From Chlorokybus atmophyticus (Eukaryota; Plantae; Mesostigma and Chlorokybus algae), in assembly GCA_009103225.1 (NCBI GenBank), contig RHPI01002568.1, forward strand, positions 199,742-263,741: a stretch of DNA of 64,000 bases, in the 5' to 3' direction. Positions 7,686-57,406 of the stretch are shown in pieces. Under the pieces are notes generated by a model. It ran no database searches, was not told the origin of the DNA, and saw only the letters and a list, made by a program, of their open reading frames with translations. A program made the translations under genes and the position numbers. Numbering within the stretch: position 1 is the first letter of the stretch; the number at the start of each line of letters is the position of its first letter.

Positions 7686-9486
7686 ATGGCGGATGCTGCC
7701 TTCGCGATAGCCTTCATGGCGATCGACTTGCTCGTGGAGTTGGCAAAGCAGGTCAGCAAATCTGTTCTTGAATTCTTGCTGATCAGTAGGAATTCACTTA
7801 TAGCGCTAACTGTTCTCACAATTGCTGGCCAGCTTACCCATCCATGAACTTCTTGTGGCGAGTAGCGGCTAGAAGTTGTGCTAAGCGGCATGGGCGACCT
7901 TGCGTGTCTTTAAGAGGATATCGTCTGCGTGACCAGCAGGATTCAAGCCCAGTCTCAAAGCACAGACACAGAGCATGGGGCTTGACTACTTGACAAAGGT
8001 CGTTGCCATAATTGATCAGGTGGCCTCCACCCACAGCACTAACAATGCGAGGGCGCATGCTGCCGAGTTGGGGCCGTTGTTGGGCTTCAATTGTCCTATA
8101 TCGCTGGAGATCATGAAGGACCCGGTAATCATTACAGAATCCGGTCAAACATGTGATCGTACGAGTGCACAGAGATGGTTCGCTGATGGCCATACCACGT
8201 GCCCAATCACAGGTTAGTGTTCTAGAGTGCAGCGGTATACCAGCAGCGAGCAAGTGGCCGTGGTGTTGTGCTACTGAGCACGACGAATTGTATACACATA
8301 ATGCCAACCGGTACTCGCTGTTGCATGTGTAAAACTATCATCAACCCAGCTTACTCTAAATTACGCGCTGCGGGGTGCTGTGGAGGATTGGTTGCACCGT
8401 CAAAGCACAATCACGTCACTGGCAACCTCCCCAACAACAGCCGGTGCAAGCGTCTCAGCGCGCCTGCATGGGATTGTGCTGCAAAGCAGTAGGGACGCTC
8501 ACAAGCTCTGTGCGCTCTTGCAGTCGGGCATGTTCGTGTTCGTTCAAGCAGCAGCCCTGGCCGCCTTGCGCCGCATGGCAGTGAACGGGCAACATGCTGC
8601 TGTTGCTGAAGCTGGTGCAGTTGCCAAGTTAGTTAGACTTTAGCACGATGGTACGTCGATCTGCAAGGCGGGAGCAGCAAACGTTCTGGGCACCTTGGCC
8701 CGGTCGGGCTCCGCTTTGAACAGGAATATCACCATGACGGGAGCCGTGGCCCCTCTGGTGGCGCTGCTGAGTACGGGCACACCAGAAGGCCAGCAGTACG
8801 CAGCTTTGGCTCTCTCCGAGCTTGCTTTTTATTCTAGGAACGCGCAGGGTTAGGGTTAGCCGCAATGCCGGAGCTATCGGGCCAGTGGTCACGCTGCTCA
8901 CATGGCCCACACGCCAGCGCTCAAGTGGGCTGCTATGAGCGCAATTGCGCAGTTGATTCGTCATGACGCTTATGCTGCTGTGGCCAGTGTCGAGGCTGGG
9001 GCGGTTGTGCCGCTAGTGGTACTTCTTCGTGACGAGAATTTAGATTGCCAGGACTTGGCAGCGGGTGTCTTAAATGAACTTGCGTGTCACATTGAAGACG
9101 CAAGGGTGGCCATTGCGCTGGCTGGTGTCATTCCTGCCCTCGTGGAGATGCTGAGCGCGAGCATGCCAACATGCCAGCAGCGCACTGCTGAGACCGTTGC
9201 CAGCATGGCGCATGCGAGTACCAAGAACAGGTTGGCAATCAGCCGCGCTGGAGCTGTCAGGCCATTGGTGGCGCTACTTGGTGTATTAAGCACACCAGAA
9301 TGCACGTTGGCGGCCGCAAGAGCACTTTGTTATCTTGCCTACAAGAACAAACGTATTACGGCGGCAATCATTGCGGCTGAGGCCGTTGCACCGCTGAACG
9401 CGCTTTGGGTTGCATGTGCACATGCATATGGTGAACCACTATGTCAAGCACCCGCGGCAAGTGCGCTCCCTCGTCTCGCGCAGTGA
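7686..9486 (+). pseudogene. PUB-A: U-box/ARM paralog pseudogene with exons 2-3 deleted
   Basis: Exon 1 at 7686-7751 (MADAAFAIAFMAIDLLVELAKQ|gt). Intron 1 joins mid-exon 4 near 7863. U-box [14 protein letters not shown]...TCPITG ends at about 8212. The exon 5 acceptor is CAT instead of CAG (8324-8326). About 7 ARM units with frameshifts and stops. Confidence 0.9.
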
Positions 9487-15087: not shown

Positions 15088-18000
15088 TCAGTGCAAAGCG
15101 GATGCAGAGGTTCGCCACCGTAGGGAATGTCCACCTGGCAGACGACAACTTTTGCAACAACACTGCCCAAGATTCGTGAGCGCTACTGTCGCGTTTTCTC
15201 GACAGGATGGTTCGCCATCTCGAAGCGCCTTCAGCGGTGCAACAGCCCCAGCCGCAATAATAGCCGCTACAACACTATTGTTACTGTTGGAAAGATTTCG
15301 AAGTGCTCTTGTAGCTGCAAACTTGCATTCCGGTGTGCTTGACTTGCACAGCAGCGTCACCAACGTTTTGATAGCTCCAGCCTTGCCGATTGCCACCTTG
15401 TACACGGTATTATTAAAGGCAATAATGGCGAGGGCATCAGCGGCGTACTGCTGACATGTCGGCGAGCTCCTGCTCAGCAGAGCCGCACGGGCAGGAATGG
15501 CTCCAGCCCGCGCCATAGCAACCCTATTATCTGCAACATCATTTGCAAGTGATGCCAAAACACTCGCTGCCGATGCCTGGCAGTCCACATCCTCATCGTC
15601 AAGAACTGCCACTAACGGCGCAATGGCCCCAGCCTCAGCAATGGCCGTAGCAGCATTGCCGTCATTGACAATTAGATTCCGGATTGCATTCATAGCAGCC
15701 TGCTTGAGTTCTGATGCGTTGGACATGTGAAGCAGCGTGATCAGTGGCCCAATAGCTCCGGCACTGCTGATAGCCACTGCAGTTGTAGCACGACAAGCAA
15801 GGCTGCAGAGAGCTGAAGCTGCGTGCTGCTGGCATGTCGACGTGCCCGTGCTCAGGAGAGCCACGAGAACCGGAATGGCTCCAGCCCGTGCAATGGCCAC
15901 CCTATGGTCTGGGACGTGAAAAGCAAGACTGCTCAGGGCTCTCGCCGCCTCTTCCTTGCAAGCTGGTCTGTCATCATCCAGAACAGCCACTAGCGCAGCA
16001 ATGGCTCCAGCTTCAATGTTGGCCGCAACATGTGCGTGATTGGTCAGAATGCGAAGAGATGTCGCAGCAGCCAATGTGCATTCTGGTGCGCTGCGAAGTA
16101 GTGCTACCAGCGGCGCAATAGCTCCTGCACTGCTTATAGCCACCGTGTTTGCAGCACTGGCGCAAGCAAGGTTGCCGAGGGCTTTAGCTGCGTATCGCTG
16201 GCACATTGGCGTGCTCGCTCTCAGTAGAGCCACGAGGGCAGGAATAGCTCCAGCCCGCGCAATGGCCGCCCTTGCGTCTGCAACCTCAGCTGCAAGTGTT
16301 CCCAAGAGATAAGCTGCCAACCTCTGGCAGTCCACATCCTTGTCACGAAGAAGCGCCACCAGTGGCGCAATGGCCCCGGCCTCAACAGTGGCCACAGCAG
16401 CATTTTCGTCATTCGTCATATCAATCACATTCCGAAGTGCATCCATAGCAGCATGCTTTTGTTCTGATGCGTTTGACATCTGAAGCAGCGCTACGAGTGA
16501 CCTGCTGATAGCCACAGCAGTTTCAGCACTCCCGCAGGCCAGGTTGCCGAGAGCCTCAGCTGCGAATCGCTGGCATGTAGGCGTGCCTGTCTGCAGCAGT
16601 GCTACAAGAGGGAGAATGGCTCCTGCCGCAACGAGTGCTGATGCCGTGGCGGCGCTCGACTCAGCCAAGAAGTTCAGATACTGCGCTGCTTGCTCCTGGC
16701 AGTTCACATCCTCGTCATCGAGAAGTGCCACTAGCGGCGCAATGGCCCCGGCCTCAACGGCCTCAGCAACATACTCGCCGTATAAATCCACATTCCACAA
16801 TGCAGCTATAGCAGACTGCTTGAGTTCTGATGCGTTTGACATGTGAAGCAACAATATCAGCTGCCTTATGCCTCCAGCACTGCAGATAGCCTCAGTGTTC
16901 TCAGCATTGTCAAGAGCAAGGCTGCCGAGGGCTTCTGCTGCGTACTGCTGGCATCCTTGCGTTCCCGTGCTCAGCAGAGCCACGAGGGTGGGAATGGCTC
17001 CAGCCCGCGCAATGGCCGCCCTGTGATCTACGACGTAAGAAGCAAGATTGCTCAGGGCTCTGGCCGCCTCTTGCTGGCAAGCTGGTGTGTCATCATTCAG
17101 AGCTGCTACCAGAGCAGCAACGGCTTCAACCTCGATAGTCGCGGCAACATCTACATGAGTGGTCAGGATGCGGAGCGCTGTCATAGTAGCCAACTTGCAG
17201 GCAGTTGTGCCAGCAGGAAGTAGCGCTACCAGCGGCGCAATAGCTCCGGCTCTGCTCATAGCTACCTGGTGCTCAGTATTGTTCAAAGCAAGGTTGGCTA
17301 GTGCTTCTGCTGCACGCTCCTGGGAAGTCGGTGTGCCTGCCTGCAGCAGCGCCACGAGAGGGGTGATGGCTCCTGCGGTGGTGATTGCTGTGTTTACGGC
17401 GGTACTCGACCGGGCCAAGATGCCCAAAACGTCTGCTGCTCGCCCTTTGCAGATTGCTGTACCGTTGTGCAAAAGTCGAACCAACTCTCCAACTGCGCCA
17501 GCTTCAGCAATGGCAGCACATTGCCCATCCACTGCCATTGTGCGCAAGGCGCTCAGGGCCTGTTCTTGAGTAGACATCATTAAGCCCAGCGTCAAGATCG
17601 CACAGAGCTTGCGAGCGTCCCCTAGGCTTTGCAGCACGAGTTCATTCTCGTATGCTGCTGGTGACGTAACTGTGCTTTGACGGTTCAGCCAATCCTCCAC
17701 AGCACTCCGCAGCGCATAGCTTGGAGTAAGCTGGGTTGATGATAGAGGTACACCTGCAACAGCGAGTACCGGTTGGCAAAATGTATATACAATTCATCGT
17801 GCTCAGTAGCACAACAACACCAAGGCCGGTTAGACACTGCTGGTATACAGCTGCACTTTGAATCACTAACCTGTGATAGGGCACGTGGTATGGCCAAGAG
17901 CGAACCAATGTTCTGCGCTTGTGCGATCACATGTTTGACCCGATCCCATTATGATCACTGGGTCCTCCATGACCAGCGAAGATATTGGACAATTGAAGCC

Positions 18001-19174
18001 CTCTAACGGCCCCAACTCCGCAGCCTGCTCCCTCGCATCACTAGCGCTGTGGGTGGATGCCACCTGATCGAGCACAGCAACAATCTTTGTCAAGTAGTCT
18101 AGCTCCACTTGCTCTGTGTTTGTGCTTTGAGACTGGGCTTGAATCCTGCTGGTCATGCAGGCGATATCCTTCTTAAGGCACGCAAGGTCGCCCATGCCAT
18201 TCAATACAACTTCTAGCCGCCGCTTGATGGCCTCATCAGCTTGCGGCCCGAGCACGAGCGCGCGCACGTTCTCTGCCAACGTCGCGTCCTCTGCAGCCAC
18301 TGCCAGCTTGGTGTCCTGGCACAGATGCATGTTGAAGCGTCCTTATAAATCAGCCTCATCTTCGAGCACCAATGTGCACCTTTAGTTCTTCTGAAATCAA
18401 AGCCCGCAGCCCGCATATCGCAGCCGCGTCGTTCAGATTGGCCAGGTCTAGGCTGTTCAAGCTGTAATCGATGCCCTGGCAGGAATGCACAGATCAGCAG
18501 ACGAGCCAGAAGCTACAAGCAGCACTGTGAGCGTCCTCAATCCTTTGCCACTGACTTGCAAGCAGCCGTTGAGGCGGTCAGTGACGCTGTTGTTGTTCCA
18601 CAACAAGGAGTAGATGCTGGTGCTTTGGCAGTGGCAAACTGCCTCTGCAGAGCGTTGCAGTGATTGGTTGAGTGAAGTGAGCGATGGCATGGTGACAGAG
18701 CTGTGCCTCTCAAGGGACGACAAGAAGTGCTTCAGGAAGCCAACTCTTCTTGCCACCACATCACAGTTCTTTTTATTCGTTTTCACCTACAAACAATGGT
18801 ACGAGTATGTGGCGCTGCAAGGGCGGGGCCGGGGGGAGGATGTGCATGGGAGGCAGCGACACTGCAAATGTGCATACATATATGCGTATGTGTTGAGTCG
18901 CTGTCCATGTGTGTATACGTGCATATGCATGTGCATGCAAGTATGCATGTGGATATGCAATTGTGGGCATATGTATGTATGTGTGTGTTTGCGCGTGGGT
19001 GATATGCTTGCAACGCAAAGCTCATAGATAGGTAGTCGTCTAGTTAGCAACTGTGCAACTACATCAGCGCTGTTGTGCATGCTGTGAACTCAACCCAAAA
19101 TCGCTAACCTGCTTTGCCATGTCCACAATTACTTCGATTGCCGTGAGGGCTGAAGAGAAGGCAGCATCTGACAT
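15088..19174 (-). CDS. PUB-B: intact four-helix-bundle (MLKL/UND-like) - U-box - ARM protein, about 1167 aa, about 19 ARM units
   Basis: Inferred exons on the minus strand: 19174-19109, 18786-18556, 18475-18380, 18315-17871, 17753-15088. All junctions are GT-AG with consistent phases; total 3504 nt with no internal stop. U-box FNCPISSLVMEDPV...TCPITG|VPLSSTQLTPSYALR. Confidence 0.88.
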
Positions 19175-19967
19175 GGTCAGGTGACGGTGATTTATGGCAA
19201 ACAAGCCGATTCCGATGGGTGTCCTTGATTGCCTTAGCAATCACATTACACCCGCATTGGACTGCTGAAATTGATAGCTCTGTTGACTACAGCTGCCTGA
19301 CGCCAGCACCTGCATAAATGTTGCAAGAAGGACACACTTCATGGCCAGCTTGCAAGCTTACAATGTTGCGGCACAGCCAAGACTGCCAAGAAAACAACTG
19401 AACAACACACGTGTGTGCTCGCAAACTAGCAAGTGCCAGTCTCACGCCAGCTGACGTCAACCAACTGCCATAATCCAGTTTGCCAAGCAGGAAGCTGACT
19501 ACCACGAGCGACTTCAATGTTTAGGTTTAGACGAAAGCATTTCCGAATTCACTGCATAGCATGCAGAGAGGCATGTTCGCTGCTTGCGGCACACTCTGGA
19601 AGCGAAAGCGGTCCATACACAGGCACATTACCGACTAATGCGGCACGCTTACCTTGACCAGGCAAGAGCAATGGGCAGCCAGCAGGTCTATCGCGAGAGT
19701 CAGCACTTAGCAGCCTTGTCCAACCCAACCAGCTGACCTGGCGACCACCTCGCCCGCCTGTGCGACCTGGCCGGCGGCCTGGCGGAGGCCAGCAAGCAGG
19801 CGGGCGAAGACAGGCCAAGTCTGGCTGTCCAGCACCAGCAGCAGCAGCAGCAGCTCTGCAAGCTTCTGCCTCTGCTGGTGCTTTAGCGAACTGCTTGTCC
19901 ATGGTCAATGAGGAGTAGCCGAGCAGGTGGCTTAACGACGAAACCGCCGCCGCCGCTGAAGGCGCCC

Positions 19968-19979
19968 CACGTGCAGCTG
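19968..19979 (-). promoter_or_regulatory. Conserved CAGCTGCACGTG (E-box + G-box) upstream of PUB-B
   Basis: The identical 12-mer lies upstream of six paralogs: 19968-19979, 21657-21668, 37697-37708, 39568-39579, 51385-51396 and 53165-53176. It sits about 60 bp 3' of a shared TATA-like GTTC(T/G/A)TAT(A)TCC motif. Flanks are also homologous, so function is not proven. Confidence 0.35.
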
Positions 19980-21656
19980 ACCCCCCTCCTGTCAAGTCAG
20001 CCACACCGACTTCCATGTTGCGTGTGCGCAGCTCCCTGGATATAAGAACATGTCTGGCGACGGACAGGTCCAATACATGACGCCTGAAGGCGACAGGTGC
20101 ACACGGGTGTGGTGCTAAACTTATCAGCCATGTAAACGGGTGTCGTGCACATGGACATGTAGCCTAAGCAGAGGTGTGAAAAAGCACCATCGCTACCAAG
20201 CATGAATGTGCACATAACGAGATGTGCCTCTTACAACTGAACACGCATACATAACACACACAAGAGTTGCGCGTAGCATACTCCGAAGTATAGGATAGAA
20301 CACCGTGCACAAGGCAATAAGCAAGCACGTAGAGCACAAGACTAAGTGGAGGCAAAAACAATGTTAATTTACTACTACGCCAACTCAGCTAGACCCCGGA
20401 GTCTCAAGCCGATGCAGTAGCAAGCAGGGTTGGACAGCACATCGCATCTTATTACCTTGCAATTATTGTCACAGCATGTACATTTGGTGGTTTACAACAC
20501 AACAAGCAAAATGTCACGGTGAATTCAATGTCAATATGAAGAAGCATGCTTTTAACGGTTTACGTAATACAATTTCTCAGTTTATGTACACATGTATGAA
20601 GATATGTATTACCACTTTTTAAGGTGCCCATTCTATTACCATTTTACGTAGCACAATAGGATGTTGCAAATGTGCTTGGTTGGATAGCGTGTGTAAGTGC
20701 GTATATGAGATAGCGATTTTCTTTGTGCGGATGTGTTCTCGTGTATACAATGCATGTGTTGAAGTCATACATGGATATGGTATGCATAGGCGGAGGCCGG
20801 AGTATAATAACGGTGTTTGACCAGAAGCATTGCATGTATGCACGGAGTAGTTGTTGCTTTTTTGAAATTCATTTGCAGTTATTGTTGCTTCAGCAGAGAC
20901 TCTCACTTGTTTCAATTAAGCGAGTCAAAAATACGATAACACAAGGCACTATGTCTTTTTGCAAAAATGGCGAAGAGCCAAACATTTGCTGTGCAAGTTC
21001 TATGAAGGCCGCGGCGTGTATGTAAAAGAAAGGGGGGGGGGGAGGCAGATTATATGTCACAAGACACTGCGTCAATCAACTCTCAGACTACTACTATACT
21101 ATTACTACTGCTATCAGTAATAATAATAATACCATATTGGTAGGGCGCAATAGTGTGGCAAAATCTTTACGAAAATTATCGTTGTAGTAAATTTGCAACT
21201 ACGTATCCAACGGCTGAAAATATGCACTCCGGTTTACATTCATTGGATTGCGTGTTTTTATAGGAATAAGATACAAACCAGCTTTCAGCCAGCCCTTTTA
21301 ATCAACATTTAACGGCACGACAATAGAGGTTGTCGTTTATTATCACTGCGCAATGGTCCACACTGATGCAATTGATGCCCTCCATCTAAATGATGAATGA
21401 TTGGTTGCCTCATGAAAGTTTTTGCCAATGATGTATGCAGTCAATGGTCAAACATGCAGGCAATGCGCATTGCATGCGTTATACGCGTCTCGCCGTCAGG
21501 AGTCATGTGTCATGACTCCTGAATTGGGAATGCGTACTGCATTATGCAGTACGCTTACTCCACCTCTGTCGCCACGTATGTGTTGTTGTTCTTATATCCC
21601 GGGAGCACGGCAGCAGCGCACATGACCCGGTATGGCTGACTTGACAGGAGGGGGGT

Positions 21657-21668
21657 CAGCTGCACGTG
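21657..21668 (+). promoter_or_regulatory. Conserved CAGCTGCACGTG (E-box + G-box) upstream of PUB-C
   Basis: Same 12-mer as upstream of B, D, F, G and H. TATA-like TTATAT at 21592-21597. Confidence 0.35.
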
Positions 21669-21737
21669 GGGCGCCTTCAGCGGCGGCGGCGGTTTCGCCG
21701 TTGAGCCACCTGCTCGGCAGACCACTGCTCATTGACC

Positions 21738-22429
21738 ATGGACAAGCAGTTCGCTCAAGCACCAGCACAGGCAGAACCTTACAGAGCTGTTGCTGCTGCT
21801 GCTGCTGGACGGCCAGACTTGGCCTGTCTCCACCCGCCTGCTTGCTGGCCTCCTCCAGGCCGCCGGCCAGGCCGCACAGGAGGGCGAGTGGCCAGCTCCG
21901 CTGGTTGGGTTGGTCAAGGCTGCTCTTTGCTGACTCGCGCGACAGACCTGCTGGCTGCCAATTGCTCCTGCCGGGCCAAGGTGAGTGTCCCGCACTAGGC
22001 CGTAATGTGCTTGTGTATGAAACGCTTTTGCTTATGGGCGAGTGTGTGCGAAAGCAGCGCAGATATGGCTTTGCATGCAGTTGGTTCGGGACTGGTTCTG
22101 TTCTTGGTTACAATGATTGTTCGCGGTAGTCAGTCGTGCTTGGCAAACAGGTTTGTGGCAGTTAAATTGACGTAAGCAGCTTGCGTGAGACCGAAACTTG
22201 CTAGTGTGCGAGCACACACATCGTGTTCAGCTATTAACTTTGCCGTCTTGGCCGCATTGCACACGTGCAAGCTTGCAGGCTGGCCATGAAGAGGTTCTTT
22301 GCAACAATATGTGTGCAGGTGCTGGCGTCAGGCCGCTGTAGTCAAACAAGCTGTCAATGTCAGCAGCCAATTGCGGGCTTTTGTGATTCAGGCAAGCAAG
22401 GACAATCAGTAGAACTGGTTCGACTTTAA
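21738..22429 (+). other. Putative spliced upstream ORF (about 117 aa) in the 5' leader of PUB-C
   Basis: ACCATGG start at 21738, donor AAG|GTGAGT after 21980, acceptor TGCAG| before 22319, stop TAA at 22427-22429, 22 nt before the main ATG at 22452. The ATG, donor and acceptor recur in paralogs (F: 39653, 39901, 40235). Confidence 0.4.
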
Positions 22430-22451
22430 TCTGCCACGAGCGACCGTCACC

Positions 22452-25400
22452 ATGGAGGATGCTGCCATCTTGACAGCCTTCACGGCAATCGACTTAATTG
22501 TGGAGTTGGCAAAGCAGGTCAGCAATTCTGTTCAGTAAGAGTTGACTGCACCTGTAGCGCTGTTGTCGTTGCTAACCAGCGCTTATCCATCTATGAACTT
22601 CTTGTGGCAAGTACAACACCCACGCATATTTGCATGCATACGTATGCGTGCATACGAAATCACGCAGACATACGCACTTGTTACAGAAGCGCATATGCGC
22701 ATGCATACTTGCAGGCACACACACCACTGCATGCGTCTGTACGCACGTACAATTAGGCAGACACGTAAACATTAACGCATTTGCAAGAGCGCTGCCCCTC
22801 CCCTCCTCCTCGGCCCCCTCCCCCNNNNNNNNNNNNNNNNNNNNNNNNNNNNNNNNNNNNNNNNNNNNNNNNNNNNNNNNNNNNNCCCCCCCCCCCCCAA
22901 ACACACACATGCAGACGTACTGATGGTGTTGTTTGTAGGTAAAAACGAACAGAACAAATTGTGCTGTGCTGGCACGAAGTGTCGGCCTTTGGAAGCACTT
23001 CCTGGCGGCCCTTCAGGAGCAATGTAGAGGGGACCGCGCTGTTAGCATGCCATCGCTCACCTCACTCAACCAGTCACTGCAACGCTCTGTGGAAGCAGTT
23101 TGGCACTGCCAAACCACCAGCGTCTACTCCTTGTTGTGGAACAACAACAAGGTCACTGACCGCCTCAACAGCTGCTTGCAAGTCGGTGACCTGTAAACTA
23201 GGACGCTCATTGTGCTTATCTGTAACTACTTGTTGAAGAACTGACCATCAGTTCAACACCGCCAGGACATTGAACACAGCTTGAACAGCCTAGACCTTTC
23301 CAGTATGAATGATGCGTATGGGACACGAGGGCTGCTGACCGTGATAGAACACGACTTAAAGGTGCATATTGAAGCTTGAAGTGACTTTGAAATAATGGAT
23401 TGATGTGAATTTATGGCAGGACACCAAGCTGGTGGCGGCTGCCGAGGACGCAGCGTTAGCAGAGGACGTGCGCGCGCTCGTGCTCGCACAAGCTGCCCAG
23501 GCCATCAAGCGGCAGCTGGAAGTTATGTTAGATGGCGTGGACAACGTTGGTTGCCTCAGTCCAGATACCGCCCTCATGACCAGCCAAGTCCCATCTCAAA
23601 GCACCAATCCGACGCGATTGGAGCCGGGCTACGTGACACAAATCAGTGCCGTGCTTGATCGTGTGGCCTCCATCCACAGCGCTAACGATGCAAGGGAGCA
23701 GGCAGCAGAGTTGGGGCCATTGGAGGGCTTGATTTGTCCAATATCGCTGGAGATCATGAGGGACCCAGTGACCATAACAGGATCGGGTCAAACATGCGAG
23801 CGCACATTGGCAGAGCATTGGTTCGCTGCTGGCCATACCACATGTCCAATTACAGGTTAGTTATTCTAGCATGCAGTGTACATCCGTAGGGAGCAAGGGG
23901 GACTCGGTGTTGTTATGCTGAGCACACAGCGCAGCATGCTCAGTATGCCAACTCGTTCTTGCTGGTGCAGGATTGAAGGTAACAATAACGGAGCTCATTC
24001 CAAACCACGCTCTGCGGGGCGTGTTGGAGGATTGGTTGACACGTCAGAGCAGGAGTACATCTGCGCCAACCTTGCCAACAGAAACTACTCCAAGCTCCTC
24101 AACAGATCCGCAGGGGTTGAATCATCAGAACGGAGACTTGTCACCAACAGCACCCAGCACGAGTGAGTCAGCGGCCTTCCAACTGCCAACAGCGGTTGGC
24201 AACGTTGTAGTTGATGAAGACGCGCTTGTTCTGCAATGCAGAGGAGACGCTCGCAAACTCTGTGCACTCTTGAAAGCGGGCATGTCCGTCCAAAAAAAGG
24301 CTCTAAGCGCATTGCGCACCATGGCAGTGGATGGGCAATACGCGGCCGTTGCTGCAGCTGGCGCAGTTGGAGAGTTGGTTCAACTTTTGCACGTTGGCAC
24401 AGCGAACTGCCAGGAGCGAGCAGCAGACGTTCTGGGCATCCTGGCACAGTCGAGCACCGCTTTGAGCACAGCAATCGCCATGGAAGGAGCCATTGCCCCT
24501 CTGGTGGCGCTGCTGCATACAGGCACGCCAACTTGCCAGGAGCGTGCAGCAGGAGCACTAGCCAACCTTGCTCTGGACAATGATGAGAACCAGGTGGCTA
24601 TGAGCAGAGCCGGAGCGATTGCGCCGCTGGTGGCGCTACTATGTACAGGCACAACAGCCTGCAAGTTGGCTGCTACAACAGTGCTCCGTGTCCTGACCAC
24701 CCATGCAGATGTTGTGGCGAATGCTGACGTTCGAGCCATTGCTGCTCTGGTGGCGGTTCTAGATAGTGACACACCAGCTTGCCAGGAAGAGGCGGCAAGG
24801 GCCCTGAGCAACCTTGCTTTTCACGTCGAAGATCACAGGGCGGCCATTGCACGGGCTGGAGCCATTCCTGTTCTCGTAGCTCTGCTGAGCATGGGCACAT
24901 CCAAAGGCCAGCAGTACGCAGCTGAAGCCCTGGGCAACCTTGCCTTCAACAATGCTGGAAACAAGGTGTCTATCAGCAGCGCTGGAGCCATTGCGCCGCT
25001 TGTAGCACTAATCAGCAGCGCAGGCGCACCAGAATGTACATTGACTGCCTTGACAGCTCTCCGCATCCTAGCCGACCACACACATGTTGCGGCCAACGTA
25101 GAAGCTGGAACCATTGCTGCGCTGGTAGCTGTTCTGGAGGATGACAGACCTTCTTGCCAAGAACAGGCGACGAGCGCCCTGAGCAGTCTTGCTTTGCACG
25201 TCCCAGACCACAGGTGGGCCATTGCGCAGGCTGGGGCCATTCCGGCTCTCGTAGCTCTGCTGAGCACGGGAACGCAAAGATGCCAGCAGTACGCAGCTTC
25301 AACTCTCTGCTACCTGACATGGAACAAAGCTGGGAAGGCACCGGCTATTTGCCGCGCTGGGGCTTTTGGGCCACTGGTTACGCTACTTCACATGTCCAAC

Positions 25401-48748: not shown

Positions 48749-50371
48749 TCACTGCTCAAGATTCCCGAGCGCCATTCTCGCTTGTTCCCGACAGCGTGGT
48801 TCACCATCTCGAAGCGCCTTCAGCGGTGCAACAGCCCCAGCCGCAATGATGGCCGCCACAACACTTTTGTTACCAGACGAAAGACTTTGAAGTGCTCTTA
48901 TAGCTGCAAGCTTGCATGCCGGTATGGTTGACGTGCACAGCAGCGTCACCAATGGTTTGATAGCTCCAGCCCCGCTGATTGCCAGCTGGAGCACGGTACT
49001 GCCAGCAGCAATGTCGGCGAGGGCATCAGCGGCGTGCTGCTGACATGTTGGCGTGCTCGCGTCCAACAGAGCCACAAGGGCAGCAAGGACACCAGCCCAC
49101 GCAGTGGCCGCCCTGTGGTCCGCGGTCCAGAAAGCAATATTGCTCAGGGCTCTCGCCGCCTCTTCCTGGCAAGATGAGTCGTCATCATTCAGAACAGACA
49201 CAAGCGCAGCAATGGCTCCAGATTCTATGTCGGCCGCACCGCGTGCGTGGCTGGTCAGGAAGCGGAGAGATTTCGTGGCAGCCAGTTTGCATTCTGGTGC
49301 GCTGCGAAGCAGTGATACCAGCGGCGCAATAGCTCCAGCGCTGCTTATAGACACCCTGAATTCGGCATTGTATGAAGCAATGCTACCGAGGGCTTCAGCT
49401 GCGTACTGCTGGCATCCTTTCGTTCCCGTGCTCAGCAGCGCCACGAGGGTGGGAATGGCTCCAGCCCGCGCAATGGCCGCCCTGTGGTCTGCGACATGAA
49501 CAGCAAGATTGCTCAGGGCTCTCGCCGCCTCCTCCTGGCAAGCTGGTGTGTCATCATTGAGAACCGCCACCAGAGCAGAGATGGCTACAATCTCAAGACT
49601 CGCTGCAACATCTGCATGGGTGGTCAGGATGCGGAGCGCTGTTGCAGCAGCCAACTGGCAGGCTGTTGTGCCTGCACGAAGCAGCGCCACCAGCGGCGCA
49701 ATCGCTCCGGCTGTGCTCATAGCCACTTTGTTCTCATCGTTGTCCAAAGCAAGGTTGGCAAGTGCTCTGGCTGCACGCTCCTGGCATGTTGGCGCGCCTG
49801 TGTGCAGCAGCGCTACCAGAGGGGCAATGGCTCCTGCCATGGCGATTGCCGTGTTCCAAGTGATGCTGGACTGTGCCAAGATGCCTAGCACGTCTGCTGC
49901 TCGCTTCTTGCAGTTCGCTGTACCGTTCGCTGTACCATCGTGCAAAAGTTGAACCAACTCTCCAACTGCGCCAGCTGCAGCAACGGCATCACATTCGCCA
50001 TCCACTGCCATGGCGCGCAAGGCACTCAGGGCCTTTTCTTGAATGGGCATTGACAAGCTCAGCATGAAGAGCGCACAGAGCTTGCGAGCGTCTCCTTTGC
50101 AGTGCAGGAAAAGCGTGTCTTCCATGACAATGTTACGAACCGCTGCTTGCAGAGGGGAGGCTGCTGACTCGCTCGTGCTCGTGTTGTGTGCCGTTGGTGA
50201 CAAGTCTCCGCTATGACGATTCAACCCCTGAGGGCCTGCCGAGCAGCTTGGGGCAGTTTCTGTTGGCGAGGTCGGCACCGTTGATATACTCCTGCTCTGG
50301 CGTCTTAGCGAATCTTCCAACGCGCCCCGCAGAGCGCGATTTGGGATGAGCTCGGTGGATGACAAATTCAT
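48749..50371 (-). CDS. PUB-G: ARM-only ORF (540 aa, about 10 ARM units) lacking the four-helix bundle and U-box
   Basis: Uninterrupted ORF from an ATG two bases into the ancestral last exon (acceptor before 50373) to ...MALGNLEQ*. Upstream exon 1 (50578-50513) has an in-frame TAG, and intron 1 is fused to intron 4, so exons 2-4 are deleted. Expression is unknown. Confidence 0.6.
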   Translation of the reverse strand: MNLSSTELIPNRALRGALEDSLRRQSRSISTVPTSPTETAPSCSAGPQGLNRHSGDLSPTAHNTSTSESAASPLQAAVRNIVMEDTLFLHCKGDARKLCALFMLSLSMPIQEKALSALRAMAVDGECDAVAAAGAVGELVQLLHDGTANGTANCKKRAADVLGILAQSSITWNTAIAMAGAIAPLVALLHTGAPTCQERAARALANLALDNDENKVAMSTAGAIAPLVALLRAGTTACQLAAATALRILTTHADVAASLEIVAISALVAVLNDDTPACQEEAARALSNLAVHVADHRAAIARAGAIPTLVALLSTGTKGCQQYAAEALGSIASYNAEFRVSISSAGAIAPLVSLLRSAPECKLAATKSLRFLTSHARGAADIESGAIAALVSVLNDDDSSCQEEAARALSNIAFWTADHRAATAWAGVLAALVALLDASTPTCQQHAADALADIAAGSTVLQLAISGAGAIKPLVTLLCTSTIPACKLAAIRALQSLSSGNKSVVAAIIAAGAVAPLKALRDGEPRCREQARMALGNLEQ

Positions 50372-53300
50372 TCCTGCACCGACCGGCTATAATGAGCTTG
50401 CAGCGATGTGTGCCCAGTATAACAACATCACCAAGGCCGGTTGCTGTGCAACCACAACAACGCGTATGGTGCAACCACAAGCAGTGAACTCTTACTGAAC
50501 ATAATTGCTGACCTGCTTGGCCAACTCCTAAATCAGGTCGATCGCTGTGAAGGCTGTCAATTTGGCAGCATCTGCCATGGTGACGGTCGCTCGTGGCGAA
50601 ATCAAACCGGTTCTACTAATTGTCCTTGCTTGCTTGGATTACACAAGTCCGCAATTGGCTGCTGATATTGACAGCTTGTTTGAGTACAGCGGCCTGACGC
50701 CAGCACCTGCACGCATGCTGTTGCAAAGAACCTCTTCATGGCCAGCTTGCAAGCTTGCATTTGTGCAGTGCGGCCAAGACGGCCAATCAAATAGCTGAAC
50801 AACACGTGTGTGCTCGCACATTAGCACACTTCAGTCTCACGCAAGCTGCTCACGTCAAACAAACTGCCACGAACCGGTTTGCAAAGCACGAAGCTGACCA
50901 CCACGAGCATCCATTAAGCACTAGGGACGAAAACATCCCTCTCACCCACCCACCCACCCACCCCCAGAACTAACTGCATAGAATGCAAAGCGGCATGTCC
51001 GCTGCTTTGGGACACACTCTGTCAGCAACGCGGTCCATACACAGGCACATTACAGACTAGTGCGGCACACTTACCTTGGCCAGGCAAGAGCAGAATTGGC
51101 AGCCAGCAGGTCTGTCGCGCGAGTCAGCCAAGAGCAGCCTTGTCCAACCCAAACAGCTGAGCTGGCGACCACCTCGCCTGCCTGTGCGACCTGGCCGGCG
51201 GCCTGGAAGAGGCCAGCAAGCAGGCGGGCGGAGACAGGCCAAGCCTGGCCGTCCAGCAGCAGCAGCTCTGTAAGCTTCTGCCTCTGCTGGCGCTTGAGCG
51301 ACCTGCTTGTCCATGGTCAAGCAGCGGTAGAAGCCGAGCAGGTGGCTCAACGGCGTAAAACCGCCGCCGCCGCTGAAGGCGTCCCACGTGCAGCTGACCC
51401 ACTCCTGTCAAGTCAGCCATACGTCCAAGTTGGGTCGTGTGTGCGCAGGTCCCCGGATATATGAACATGTGTGGTGATGGACAGGTACAACACATGACGC
51501 CTGAAGGCGACAGGTGTAACAGAGGTGGTTGACATGTAACATGCTGCCAAGCATGAACGGTACATGAGTCTACATGTACCGTTCATAGAGCGCATTGTAT
51601 AGTCTAACCTCGATCTAAGTATCGTTGGGTACCAACCAAGCTGTGTTTACGGCACCTTCGGTTTATGCATATAATGACTTTTGCAAGTTTAACATGCTTC
51701 AGCGCAATAGCCTAGGCAATACGTCATCGTAAACATGTATTGGCACATGAATGTTCATGCATGAGTCTATGCGAATGTGTAGTACATATAAACACGTATA
51801 TGTATGAGTCAGTACACATGGACAATATTGTGACATGCACTTCAACATTTTCGCGCTTGTTGTCATCACAAATGGCAATTATGGGGTGTGCTTATATCGA
51901 GTGTAATGATGCTTGAATGCGAGAGTAATTAGTCATCAACATTTGATTCTATACAAATGCTTTAATATTTTTACTTGAGTTGTGTTCAAGGCAAGTGCGT
52001 TTGATTACAAGGAGGCTGGACTGTCTTGAAATGTCGTTGCAGCATTCATTTGATGCGAAGCATGTGTATAAGCACATCTCGGGTATCCAAAAATGTGCTT
52101 TTCGTAATGTATACATGCATATTAAAATGCGCGTTATATATACATATATATACATATGTATATATAATGCGCATCTGTCGCCAACAGCCTCGTTGTATAT
52201 GTACACAAACGGTGCTTACAACAACAAAAAAAAAGTGTCAAGATTTACGCTGTACAAGTTATGAGTATTATGTGTACATACGTATTGATGTATGTGTTAA
52301 CACTTGAAAGTCGCCATCTCTGCATCCACCATGAGTGGTTTGACAGTGCTCAGATGAAATGTGCAAGTGCCTTTATATATTCAACTTATGACATGAAATG
52401 TGCAGGTGCTTACATACATCAGACTATGTCTAACGTACCATCATAAAACACTGCATGCCAACTTGTGTAGCTAAGGCAATCGCCACGTTATCAATAAAAA
52501 TTCAAAAATTTTTTAGATTGTGCTTTAAGATAACATGCTTATAAAAAGCTTGAACCATAATAAATTTGCTCAACAACAAGCAATGCGTGTATGCACATGG
52601 TATTTGTTGCCCCCAATAAAGCTTTCGTACATTTACAGCTCGCTATTCTTTAAATTACTACTCATGATTGTAAAGCTGAGTGGCTCATGCGCGCGTGCGT
52701 GCGTGCGTGCGTGTGATACGATGTTACATGGCTCTTCCCCATGTATGGAACCGCGAAGACTTAACGTTTGCTCATGGCCGGGAATGAGGAGGGGGGAGAA
52801 GGGGGGGGGGGGGGGGGGGNTGCGACGTGGCACTGCGTTGCATATTGCAATAGACACAGTGATCTCGACTCTATGTAGAAGTGTGATGCTTGCCACTTTA
52901 TGGTTGACACATGTGTATAGACGGCCTCATCTGGGATGAATATCTGGACAATCAAGGTCTTTGCCTACACACATTATATGCAGGCACTGCGTCAAACACG
53001 TGTCGCCTTCAGGGGCTTCAGGTCAGTGAGACTCTGCATAGCCAACACATGACGCCGCGTCATGTCTCATGTGTTGGCTATGCAGAGTATGTGTTGTTGT
53101 TCGTATATCCCGGGAGTACGGCAGCAGCGCACATGACCCAGTGTGGCTGATTGACGGAGTAGGTCAGCTGCACGTGGGGCGGCCTTCAGCGGCGGCGGCG
53201 GTTTCGCCGTTGAGCCACCTGCTCGGCTACTCCTCATTGACCATGGACAGGCAGTCCGCGCAGGCACCAGCAGAGGCAGAAGCTTACAGCGCTGCTGCTG

Positions 53301-53394
53301 CTGCTGGACGGCCAGGCTTGGCCTATCTACGCCCGCCTGCTGGCTGGCCTCCTCCAGGCCACCGGCCAGATCGCACAGGCAGGGGAGGTCACCA

Positions 53395-53593
53395 GCTCAG
53401 CTGGTTGGGTTGGATAAGGCTGCTTTCTATTCAGTCGCATAGCTGCTGGCCAACTCTGCTGTTGCCTGACCGTGGTGAGTGTGCCACAGCAATATGCTTG
53501 CTCAGCTGGTTGGGTTGGATAAGGCTGCTTTCTATTCAGTCGCATAGCTGCTGGCCAACTCTGCTGTTGCCTGACCGTGGTGAGTGTGCCACA
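53395..53593 (+). repeat. 105-bp-period tandem duplication in the PUB-H leader exon, duplicating its splice donor
   Basis: 53395-53488 and 53500-53593 are identical 94-bp blocks, each containing GTGAGT. Confidence 0.9.
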
Positions 53594-54023
53594 CTAATAT
53601 TCTTGTATTTGGACCGGTTGCATTTGTGAAACGTGTTCTGAAGCAGCGGCTTAGCATGCTGCGCAATAAGTTAGTGCGGAACGCTCTCGTGAGGTTAGTG
53701 CTTGATCGAATTGCCCGTGATATCAGCTGCATGCTTGGCAAGTTGATTGGTGGCAGTTAGTCTCAAGTAAGCAGCTTGCGCGAGACTGACGTTTGCCAGT
53801 GTGCGAGCACACGAGTGTATTCTTCAGCTGTTTGCAGTCTTGGCTGCACGGCACAGATGCAAGCTGGCCATCAAGTGCAGATTTACAACACATGTGTGCA
53901 GGTGCTGGCGTCAGGCCGCTGTAGTCAACAGAGCTGTCAACTTCAGTCCATCGCAGACTTCTTGTGATCAAGCAAGGGCAATCCCTAGGACTGCTCTCAG
54001 TTCTCCACGAAAGCAGCATCACC

Positions 54024-57000
54024 ATGGCGGATGCTGCTTTCTCTGCAGCCTTCACGGCGGTCAACTTGATTATGGAGTTGGCATCGCAGGTCAGCGATTC
54101 TGCTCACAGCATGCACCTGTAGCGCTTATGTTGTAGTTGCACGATTGCTAGCCAGCACTTAACCATCATTGAACTTTTTGTGGCAAGTGCATCACACACG
54201 CTGGCGTGTACACGCATATGCTTCCAGAAGCGCGTATGTGCACATATGCTTGCATGCACACGCACAAGCAGATGCAGATGCACGGAAGGTGAATCACACA
54301 CGCCCGCAAGGAACATGGAAACCCACATTTGCAAGGGCGCTGCCTTCCCCGCACCTCCCCCCCATGCCTTCGTGTTCACGCACGCACGCACGCGCACACA
54401 CACACAACTAAGTTGTCACAAAGTGGGACAGTAAGCTGCATCGTTGGACGCTAATTCGTGCTTTTATGCCTTCGATAGGGAGCATGACTTGTACCCGTTA
54501 GACACCGCAAGTGTAAAGTAAGCGGTGTAAGCAGTGTAAAGTACAAAGTCAGCTCTGTGCTCAAATTTTAATGCTAACACAGACTTCAACATTCCTTGTG
54601 GTTGTCTGCAACATCACTGCTCAAGATTCCCGAGCGCCATTCTCGCTTGTTCCCGACAGCGTGGTTCACCATCTCGAAGCGCCTTCAGCGGTGCAACAGC
54701 CCCAGCCGCAATGATGGCNGCACTTCTTGGAGTCTCTTCAGAAGCAATGCGTCGGGGACAGCTCTGTCAGCATGCCATCGCTCACCTCACTCAATCAGTC
54801 CCTGCAACGCTCTGTGGAAGCAGTTTACCAGTGCCAAAGTACAAGCATCTACTCTTTACTGTGGAACAACAACAAAGTCACTGACCGCCTCAATGGCTGC
54901 TTGCAAGTCAGTGACTTGACAACTTGGACGCTCGTTGTGCTTCTTTTATCTACAACATTCTTTGGAGCACTAACTATCATTGCATTTCCGCCAGGACATT
55001 GAAAGCAGCTTGAACAGCCTCGACCTTGCTGGCCTGAACAATGCAGATGGGACGCGGGGGCTGCTGACTTTCATTGCACATGAGCTAAAGGTGCACTTCA
55101 ATGCGTGAAGATGACGTTGATTTTACACCTATAACGTGATTTTAAGCCAGGACACCAAGCTGGTGGTGGCTGCAGAGGACGCAACGGTGGCAGAGGACGT
55201 GCGCGCGCTTGCACAAGCTGCTCAGGCTAGCAAGCGACAGCTGGAACATATGTTGAGCGGCATGGGCGACCTCGCTTGCCTTAAGCAAGACATTGCCTGC
55301 ATGACCAGAAGGAATCAAGCCCAGTCCCCAAGCACAGACACAGAGCTATTGGAGCTAGACTATTTGACACAGGTTGTTGCCGTGCTCGACGAGGTGGCAT
55401 CCACCCACAGCGCTATTGATGCGAAGGAGCAGGCTGTGGAGTTGGGGCCGTTAGAGGGCTTCATTTGTCCGTTATCGCTGGACATCATGAGGGACCCGGT
55501 GATCATAACAGGATCTGGTCAAACATGCCAGCGCACATTGGCAGAGCATTGGTTCGCTGCTGGCAATACCACGTGCCCTATCACAGGTTAGTGTGCTAGA
55601 GTGCAGCTGTGTATTAGCAGTGAGCAAGCGGCCTTGGTGTTGTAAATTACAACTTGTAATACTGAGCACGATACATTGTACACGCATGATGCCAATTGGT
55701 GCTCACTGGTGCAGGTGTACAACTATCATCGGCCCAGCTCATCCCGAACTACGCACTGCGGGGTGCTGTTGAGGATTGGCTGAACCGTCGAAGCACAATT
55801 ACGTCACCGGCAACCTCCCCAACAACAGGTGGTGCAAGCGTCTCAGCGCCCCCCCAGGGCTCAAATCAAAGCGGTAACTTTCTAGCAGCGCTCGGCACAA
55901 GCGTGTTAGCGCTTTATCAGGTGCAAGCAGCCCGTAGTACCCCTGCGTCTGAGGATGAGATTGTGTTGCAAAGCAGAGGGGACGCTCGCAAGCTCTGTGC
56001 GCTCGTGCAGCCGGGCATGTCCATGTCCATCTAAGTTAAAGCCCTGAGCGCATTGCGCATCATGGCAGTGAATGGGCAACATGCTGCCGTTGCTGAAGCT
56101 GGTGCCGTTGCCAAATTGATTGGTCTGTTGCGTGATGGTACAGCGACCTGCAAGGCGCGAGCAGCAGACATTTTGTGCATATTGGCCCGGTCAAGCACCA
56201 CCTCAAACACGGCAATTACCACGGCAGGAGCCATTGCCCCTCTCGTGACGCTGCTGCAGTCAGGCACACCGACATGCCAGGAGCATGCAGCAGAAGCACT
56301 AGGCACCCTGGCTTGTAACAGTGAGGAAAACCAGGTGGCTATAAACAGGGCTGGAGCTATTGCACCGCTAGTGGCACTACTTCGTCCAGGCACAACAGCA
56401 AGCAAGTTGGCTGCTATGACAGCGCTCCGCGTCCTGACCACCTATAAACATGCGGCGATTGTTGAGGTTGGAGCCATTTCTGCTCTGGTGACGGTTCTAA
56501 ATGATGACACATCAGCTTGCCAAGAAGAAGCGGCGAGGGCGCTGAGCAATCTAGGTGAACATGTCGCAGACTATAAGGCGGCCATTGCGCGCGCTGGAGC
56601 CATTCCTATCCTTGTGGCCATGCTGAACAGGAGCACGTCAGAAGGCCAGCTAATTGCAGCGCGCTCTCTGCAACCTTGCTTATAGCTATGAGAACAAGGT
56701 GGCTATCTGCAGGGCTGGAGGTATCGGGCTGCTGGTCGCGTTGCTCCACATAACAAACGCACCAGTACTGAAACAGGCTTCTCTGAGAGCGCTCGAGATT
56801 CTCATTGGCAATGACAAAAATACTGCTGCGGACACGGTTGAGGCAGGGGTTGCACCGCTAGTGGCACTTCTTGACAACGAGGACGTGACCTGCCAAGCGT
56901 GCGCAGCAGGTGTTCTGAGTTTACTTGTCAAGAGAAGTGCACTCAGCTGGACTGCCATTGCACAAGCTGGCGCCATTCCTGCCCTCGTGGCTATGCTGAG

Positions 57001-57406
57001 TGCGAGCAGCACGCCAACATGCCAGCAGTGCGCCGCTGAGGCCCTCGCCAACATAGCTCTTATCAACACCAAGATCAAGGTGGCAATCAGCGAGGCTGGG
57101 GCTATCAGGCCGTTGGTGAATCTACTTTGCAACTCAAGCACACCGCAATGCAAGTGTGCAGCTATCCGAGCACTTCGATTTCTTTCCAGCAACTGTGACC
57201 TTGGTGTTGTGGCGGCAATTATTGAAGCTGGGGCCGTTGCTCCGATGAAGGCGATTCGGGATGGCAAAGAAAGCGGTTGGTCACAGGCAGCAAGAGTGCT
57301 AAAAAACCTTGGCCTAGTGTCAGAAAGTCAACGTCTGCCAGGTGGACATTCCCTACGCTGGAGACCCTCTGCGTTTACATTGCGGAGAGAGAGGATGCAG
57401 CAGTAG
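54024..57406 (+). pseudogene. PUB-H: four-helix-bundle - U-box - ARM probable pseudogene, about 10 ARM units
   Basis: Exon 1 at 54024-54089; exon 2 start missing at the N at 54719, remainder to 54906; exons 54995-55090, 55151-55586 (U-box FICPLSLDIMRDPV) and 55715 onward. CAA>TAA nonsense at 56032-56034; frameshift near 56660. Confidence 0.85.
54361..54718 (+). repeat. 358-bp apparently identical copy of 48496-48853 (PUB-G 3' end and flank); probable assembly artefact
   Basis: The sequences match base for base as far as I can read. The copy begins at a poly-C tract, ends at a single N (54719), and replaces the expected start of PUB-H exon 2. Confidence 0.8.

Follow-up and report, generated by a model that had tools for sequence, protein, structure and literature searches.

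The U-box/ARM gene cluster and its repeat arrays

We have analyzed a stretch of 64,000 nucleotides from the alga Chlorokybus atmophyticus (GenBank assembly GCA_009103225.1, contig RHPI01002568.1, positions 199,742 to 263,741 of the forward strand; this whole stretch is the window, and all positions below are counted from its first letter), in order to describe the long arrays of armadillo (ARM) repeats that it encodes. The window has a eukaryote-like look, with a G+C content of ~0.52, gaps of N and long open reading frames (ORFs) on both strands. The large ORFs at 8-58 kb are paralogues of one another, and Pfam recognizes in them a U-box and ARM repeats; the window is a tandem cluster of paralogous genes that encode an N-terminal helical domain, a U-box and an ARM array. 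Gene C is intact and annotated. Its public gene model, retrieved by protein search, is Chrsp82S07940 of JGI Chlat1 (P0001, 942 aa), and this was also the spliced model used by us. The order in this protein is an MCAfunc-like N-domain, the U-box, a linker and the ARM array; its last exon is identical (100%) to window positions 23970-25955, and the upstream exons map to 22452-23857 (exon 1 is 22452-22520, exon 2 begins at 22939). [quoted passage not shown] A U-box that precedes the ARM array in the same protein fits the PUB-ARM type, and the genes of the cluster are, judging by these matches, probably ubiquitin-ligase-like (E3 ligases of the U-box/ARM type). The N-terminal region (residues 1-281, 22452-23857) resembles MCAfunc (PF19584), with a score of 24.6 bits that does not reach the cut-off of 35. 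Gene D has retained a piece of the U-box.

The arrays were delimited with a hidden Markov model (HMM) of the ARM repeat made from gene C, refined on 78 repeats and run against all six frames. Every array consists of an N-cap followed by (i, ii, iii)n, where i, ii and iii are three types of repeat: it starts with a repeat named N1, followed by type i, and closes with a cap that resembles type iii. A weaker leading repeat, N0, is omitted from the counts. The positions and module compositions of the arrays are collected in Table 1. An eighth array, outside the window, is that of the annotated paralogue Chrsp82S07937 (P0002), which reads N1 + b + c and has 7 repeats; with gene B as query, the protein search returned no Chlorokybus paralogues beyond P0001 and P0002. 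The numbers of modules across the eight arrays are 2, 2, 3, 3, 4, 6, 7 and 10, with no difference of one or two repeats. An earlier note on this DNA, made by eye, had counted 7, 19, 13, 22, 31, 10 and 10 repeats for A, B, C, D, F, G and H; the repeat HMM returns exactly these counts, if the 9-residue remnant D03 is taken in for D and 11 repeats past a frameshift near 44690 for F. Array A lies outside the span of 15088-57300 to which that note referred. The claim that all the counts equal 1 modulo 3 holds when N0 is omitted, and is in this sense a counting convention, because AlphaFold2 models N0 as a real three-helix repeat: with N0 included the arrays are 3n+2. None of the arrays contains a gap of N, so that the counts do not depend on continuity across the gaps of the assembly.

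Table 1. Arrays, tandem repeats, assembly gaps and one duplicated segment of the window (a, b and c are module flavours, b' is b-like; n is the number of modules).
Feature	Position	Strand	Description
Array A	8506-9480	+	7 repeats: N0, N1 + b c (n=2)
Array B	15169-17568	-	19 repeats: N0, N1 + a b b a b c (n=6); within open ORF 15088-17700
Array C	24258-25949	+	13 repeats: N0, N1 + a a b c (n=4); last exon of Chrsp82S07940
Array D	32179-34890	-	22 repeats: N0, N1 + a b' b b a b c (n=7)
Array F	42176-45996	+	31 repeats: N1 + a a a b b b a a b c (n=10)
Array G	48758-50041	-	10 repeats: N0, N1 + a a c (n=3); ORF 48749-50371
Array H	56041-57325	+	10 repeats: N0, N1 + a b c (n=3)
Tandem array in F	42379-43515	+	period 375 bp, 3.0 copies, 85% matches; contains Fm2a/Fm3a
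Tandem array in F	44519-45304	+	period 372 bp, 2.1 copies, 82% matches; Fm7a/Fm8a
Assembly gap	22825-22885		gene C intron 1, 1.4 kb upstream of the array
Assembly gap	27708-28446		intergenic
Assembly gap	36243-36540		gene D intron 1 (between 36826 and 36193), equivalent to the gene C intron; outside the array
Segment "E"	54361-54721	-	361-bp copy, 99.7% identical, of the G 3' end and flank 48496-48856; ends at single N 54719

Repeat types, module flavours and DNA periodicity

For the analysis of the repeat types, class labels were assigned to the 110 repeats of the 7 arrays by position alone (N1, then i, ii and iii in cycles). For 108 of the 110 repeats the closest match in a different gene carries the same class label; the exceptions, A07 and D04, are decayed repeats of damaged copies. 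Mean protein identity is 0.50-0.56 inside a class vs 0.37-0.43 between classes, and in gene C the identity at repeat distances from 1 to 6 is 0.41, 0.38, 0.50, 0.41, 0.40 and 0.45. The maximum-likelihood (ML) tree of all the repeats requires only 4 label changes (minimum 3), against a mean of 55.9 for shuffled labels, with none of 200 shuffles giving a value as low. Unsupervised average-linkage clustering is dominated by decayed outlier repeats at k = 3 to 6, and the cycle emerges only at k = 8, at which point all arrays read, in cluster numbers, 3 / 4, (1 or 2), 5 / 4, (1 or 2), 5 and so on, a strict three-step cycle. The neighbour test, the tree and the clustering thus agree, and the cycling through three types described in the earlier note is found without exception. 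The expectation that a repeat tree would show three clades is borne out only in part: the classes are separated, with type ii forming a single clade (support 89) with subclades iia, iib and iic, but type iii is split into three clades (iiia, iiib and the C-terminal cap), and the type i repeats form a backbone that the tree does not resolve. All three types are 39-43 residues long. We also considered whether N0 and N1 could be an ii-iii pair at the head of the array, by which the entire domain would become periodic; with HMMs for the individual subtypes N1 scores about equally on i(a) and iii(b), and N0 stays below 11 bits, and the idea was dropped.

The subclades reveal a further level of order, which had been missed in the earlier note. 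The next repeat is iiia after all 14 copies of iia, iiib after 13 of 13 copies of iib (to which one ambiguous pair, D06-D07, can be added), and the cap after all 7 copies of iic; types ii and iii are coupled pairs, of flavour a or b in the interior and of flavour c at the end. The same division is recovered from the DNA of the 35 modules, whose tree contains the clades a (support 100/99), b (96/99) and c (100/99). Within these clades we find both positional orthologues across genes, among them Cm1a+Fm1a, Bm2b+Fm5b, Bm3b+Fm6b and Cm3b+Fm9b (all at 100), and within-gene sister pairs, namely Fm2a+Fm3a (98/95) and Fm7a+Fm8a (100/98). Module identity inside a flavour averages 0.72-0.76, with a single pair at 0.94.

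Type i behaves differently from its neighbours. All identities between repeats at the DNA level are fixed-column values, since values from pairwise alignments with free end gaps were inflated by short alignments and were discarded. By this measure a type i repeat from an a module and one from a b module share 67% identity, as much as is found inside b, vs 55% for iia against iib and 55% for iiia against iiib. The type i repeat tracks the flavour of its neighbours only weakly, with 7 label changes relative to the downstream cassette, 10 relative to the upstream one and 16 after shuffling. Type i thus looks nearly flavour-blind, as if it were a "hinge" of shared homology between a and b cassettes. 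Since it is the sole place of homology between a and b modules, the flavours of ii and iii stay together.

The module is also evident as a periodicity of the DNA. The autocorrelation has peaks at 126, 369-375 and ~750 bp, and is lower at 252 bp in every array of at least 10 repeats (B, C, D, F, G and H); the peak at 369-375 bp, where one near 370 bp had been predicted, is the highest of all in F and G. Tandem Repeats Finder (TRF), run over the window, reports periods of 375 and 372 bp in the arrays (Table 1) and no 126-bp tandem array. Same-type repeats share 63-76% of their DNA positions, and repeats of different types 45-50%; inside type ii or iii, copies of flavours a, b and c share 48-59%. 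The contrast is sharper for exact shared tracts of at least 20 bp, which occur in 9.9% of i-i, 5.2% of ii-ii and 6.7% of iii-iii pairs, and in just 1 of 4410 cross-class pairs, an ii-iii pair with a tract of exactly 20 bp.

Change by whole modules and its possible causes

Two F-specific tandem duplications of a whole module can be recognized, Fm2/Fm3 (94% identical) and Fm7/Fm8 (84%). Together with the whole-module differences between arrays and the TRF periods, they support the suggestion that the trimer (~375 bp) is the unit of copy-number change. Array F as a whole is a composite, with a C-like head, B-like modules 4-6 and a C-like module 9. Between C (24352-25023, +) and F (42168-42840) there is a stretch of ~670 bp at 93-100% identity, with flanks at 56-90%, which extends from the start of N1 to ~40 bp inside repeat 6; it is in register, and its ends lie off the module borders. 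On the sequence comparison this is a tract of in-register gene conversion or exchange.

The reading that we consider probable is that the arrays change by whole i-ii-iii modules through a homology-dependent exchange that preserves the register, with ii-iii cassettes being joined in type i. An old triplication-like event would have yielded three ARM repeat types that then diverged; later growth, shrinkage and segment exchange would have taken place only in steps of one ~375-bp module. The candidate processes are unequal crossover between sister chromatids or paralogues, replication slippage between modules, and gene conversion, all of which, as homology-dependent processes, would pair same-type repeats only. 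The ii-iii pair would act as a cassette, with a and b as interior and c as terminal flavours, and the more uniform type i would supply the shared homology for joining a and b cassettes. What carries this reading is what is seen directly in the arrays: the unbroken cycle of types, differences that amount to whole modules, tandem duplicates, the in-register tract and the restriction of exact matches to same-type repeats. Since homology across types is low and exact tracts are almost confined to repeats of the same type, homology-dependent exchange pairs repeats in register only; such register-preserving exchange explains the rule of whole modules, for which the mechanics of recombination alone suffice. 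The proposal of the earlier note, an unequal crossover that keeps the register, agrees with the tandem module duplicates and with the C-F tract; crossover as the type of event, and type i as its preferred site, are what we infer.

Several observations weigh against this reading or limit it. A clean crossover junction was sought in repeats G08 and F08, and none could be pinned down. Repeat F08 (43040-43165, type i) is, over its 3' 70 nt, 98% identical to F05/C05, and only 76% in its 5' part; there the differences are clustered in a divergent patch of ~36 nt, with 7 amino-acid changes, whose donor is unclear. If F08 were the crossover junction from which the Fm2/Fm3 duplication arose, its 5' part should resemble F11, which it does not, contrary to a simple unequal crossover; the patch looks like a short conversion from another paralogue, as far as can be judged from the sequence. 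The data are from one genome, in which allelic variants of array length were not encountered. Identity between modules is for the most part only 65-85%, because of which most events must be old and, with the exception of Fm2a/Fm3a and of the C-F tract, the process is not demonstrably ongoing. Finally, the decayed copies may have gained their module structure while still under selection, and their regularity leaves room for selection on the trimer. G08 had also been considered as a deletion chimera of i(b) and i(c) that would mark where G has lost a b module; this was rejected, all of its informative sites being i(c)-like.

Change is not limited to whole modules in the strictest sense. Where the earlier note had the arrays expanding and contracting only in three-repeat modules, this is correct for whole repeats, but not for deletions smaller than a repeat. 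The same short deletion across the border of type i and iib is present in B08/B09 (16396-16629) and in F17/F18 (44162-44395), where the units measure 111 and 132-135 bp and not 126 bp each; as a derived mark of the module it is shared by the two genes, and indels of this kind are tolerated. In the same way D12 has only 72 bp, and D02/D03 are truncated.

Of the alternatives, the one that fares best is that the trimer forms a unit of structure or function, which might for example read one periodic segment of a ligand, with selection removing the variants that fall out of register. We regard it as unlikely. Type-specific signatures are kept across the paralogues, the flavours of ii and iii are perfectly coupled and the two ends of the arrays are constant, all of which speak for such a unit. 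An AlphaFold2 model of the last exon of gene C (52 aligned sequences; mean predicted local distance difference test score (pLDDT) 89.5, predicted template modelling score (pTM) 0.77) adds to this a periodic difference in predicted helix length: the longest helix of a unit has 17 residues in iii, iib and N1, and 14-15 in i, iia and iic; each iia is, in addition, followed by a helix of only 4-6 residues, where pLDDT dips slightly. The same model, however, is a single continuous solenoid of 14 three-helix units, N0 included, in which pLDDT is >93 across the iii-to-i borders of the modules. It does not indicate a discrete three-repeat body, and the claim that the trimer is the structural unit is to this extent not supported. 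In a Foldseek search the model matches the designed ARM protein 4rv1 (TM-score, the template modelling score, 0.91), beta-catenin and Vac8, in agreement with the sequence search. The register is moreover retained in copies that are frameshifted or contain stops (A, D, H and the tail of F), and the ratio of nonsynonymous to synonymous substitution rates (dN/dS) of positional orthologues is 0.36-0.84, reaching 0.95-1.2 in 2 of 3 comparisons of c modules (synonymous divergence dS 0.08-0.48), which denotes weak constraint. The picture is one of a weakly constrained family that evolves by birth and death. No ligand is known, and the lack of homology between types is already enough to explain the rule.

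As a more speculative and rather improbable extension, the cluster might be a fast-evolving recognition family, whose proteins would combine an N-domain that acts on membranes or is MLKL/MCAfunc-like with a U-box and an ARM surface that varies. In such a family type i would serve as a recombination handle for shuffling, duplicating and exchanging ii-iii cassettes between paralogues while the fold is left intact. If this were true, the locus would be a coded diversity generator, loosely like the leucine-rich repeat receptors that are built from cassettes, and possibly one that reads ligands of matching period.

An artefact of the assembly appears very improbable as the source of the pattern. 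Collapse or expansion of a repetitive region could in principle give steps of whole modules, the scaffold does contain gaps of N and a near-identical 361-bp duplicate that ends at a single N, modules Fm2a and Fm3a are 94% identical, and the frameshifts could be sequencing errors. However, most modules differ at 15-35% of their DNA positions, far beyond what mis-assembly would produce, the arrays themselves are free of gaps, and the array of gene C is found at 100% identity over the ARM exon in an independent public gene model. Exon shuffling, in which the module would be an exon or set of exons duplicated by recombination in introns, as has been proposed for some repeat families (PMC1553488), is excluded for practical purposes because the arrays run as ORFs of 1.6-3 kb that no intron interrupts, and that of gene C lies entirely in one exon.

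Related systems, condition of the genes and minor features

These results can be compared with what is known of other repeat systems. Repeat proteins mostly expand by several repeats at once, in the middle of the array, with the seven-domain unit of nebulin as the clearest case (Bjorklund, Ekman and Elofsson 2006, PMC1553488). The present arrays are like nebulin and other super-repeats in that similarity peaks at a distance of several repeats and that expansion by several repeats is mostly internal; they are unlike the cases of that paper, in whose text armadillo is absent, in that the rule can be traced across eight paralogous arrays, with evidence at the DNA level for its cause. In architecture the closest parallel is with the PLS class of pentatricopeptide repeat (PPR) proteins, arranged as (P1-L1-S1)n-P2-L2-S2 (PMC8110955), which are also alpha-solenoids with a three-type triplet iterated a variable number of times and with a last triplet of a different make; the closing triplet here is i(c)-ii(c)-cap. 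PPR proteins, however, belong to another fold family without homology to ARM (RNA-binding, organellar), their repeat types differ in length, unlike those described here, and they have no equivalent of the two alternative interior cassettes a and b or of paralogues in one tandem gene cluster. A Pfam scan of the arrays returned only Arm and HEAT families and no PPR, so that the likeness is one of architecture and not of descent.

In higher-order repeats (HORs) of satellite DNA, such as alpha satellite, diverged monomers are combined in multimers, unequal exchange proceeds in units of such a multimer, and identity between units exceeds identity between monomers. The comparison of the arrays with a coding higher-order repeat, drawn in the earlier note, is an apt one, because identity is likewise higher between units than between monomers and exact tracts are almost confined to repeats of the same type. 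The arrays differ from satellites in being coding, in having 2-10 units, and in a level of identity that is mostly 63-85% (94% for one pair) and not near-identity; homogenisation to near-identical units, as in satellites, is not what we find within a flavour (0.72-0.76).

With respect to ARM proteins, the genes of the cluster are like PUB-ARM proteins in having a U-box followed by an ARM array, and their predicted fold is like that of 4rv1, Vac8 and beta-catenin. In contrast to PUB-ARM proteins and to canonical ARM solenoids, including importin-alpha, the arrays are much longer and of variable length (7-31 repeats), and the N-terminal domain is MCAfunc-like at a score under the Pfam cut-off. 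The closest proteins outside Chlorokybus in the protein search, from haptophytes, oomycetes, dinoflagellates and metagenomes, are 30-43% identical. Their ARM arrays have periods of 1, 2 or 5, and period 3 was not found among the nearest matches; because of this we consider the trimer to be specific to the Chlorokybus lineage. The haptophyte proteins, which resemble 'vacuolar protein 8', have nearly homogenised period-1 arrays, in which repeats are 70-80% identical whatever their distance; the period is 2 in P0029, and 5 in P0038, a U-box/ARM protein of a dinoflagellate, and in its close relatives P0037 and P0055. A search of the literature, which was not exhaustive, found no paper on a module of this kind in ARM arrays or on the Chlorokybus cluster; a paper on a Plasmodium ARM protein, considered as a possible precedent for super-repeats, appears unrelated.

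Duplication units of several repeats are already well known, and nothing is overturned by these findings. The cluster is nevertheless an unusually clean natural case, in which eight paralogous arrays have 2-10 modules and have changed in length without the order of the repeats being disturbed, and in which the cause can be measured at the DNA level, long exact matches being nearly limited to same-type repeats. For protein evolution and design, it suggests that a shared hinge repeat placed beside alternative two-repeat cassettes can render an array modular. For plant biology, it is an example of lineage-specific expansion, by birth and death, of U-box/ARM genes in an early-branching streptophyte alga.

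The condition of the genes is uneven, most copies being damaged (A, D, H and the end of F) or, as G is, truncated. The array of gene B is open. In gene A the frame changes at ~8867 and at ~8908, and N1 contains an in-frame stop; gene H has such a stop in N0 and is frameshifted near 56670. Gene D, with several frame changes and the truncated repeats already mentioned, is a decayed copy. The ORF of gene F ends at 44740, and frame changes are located near 44690, at 45360-45400 and near 45500. The array of gene G is also open, but the gene has no equivalent of gene C residues 23-281 (N-domain and U-box core); a match to exon 1 (50003-50578, -; gene C residues 1-23, with one stop) is retained together with the last exon. 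Gene G is, from its sequence, most probably either a U-box-less ARM derivative or a pseudogene.

The short segment labelled "E" in Table 1 was picked up by the repeat HMM at 54623-54709, and is not an array but part of the 361-bp copy of gene G; it is either an artefact of the joining of contigs or a truncated segmental duplicate. The N-terminal exon of gene H starts right after it. In the spacer between genes G and H, at 53395-53605, there is a direct tandem repeat with a unit of 105 bp (2.0 copies, 97% matches).

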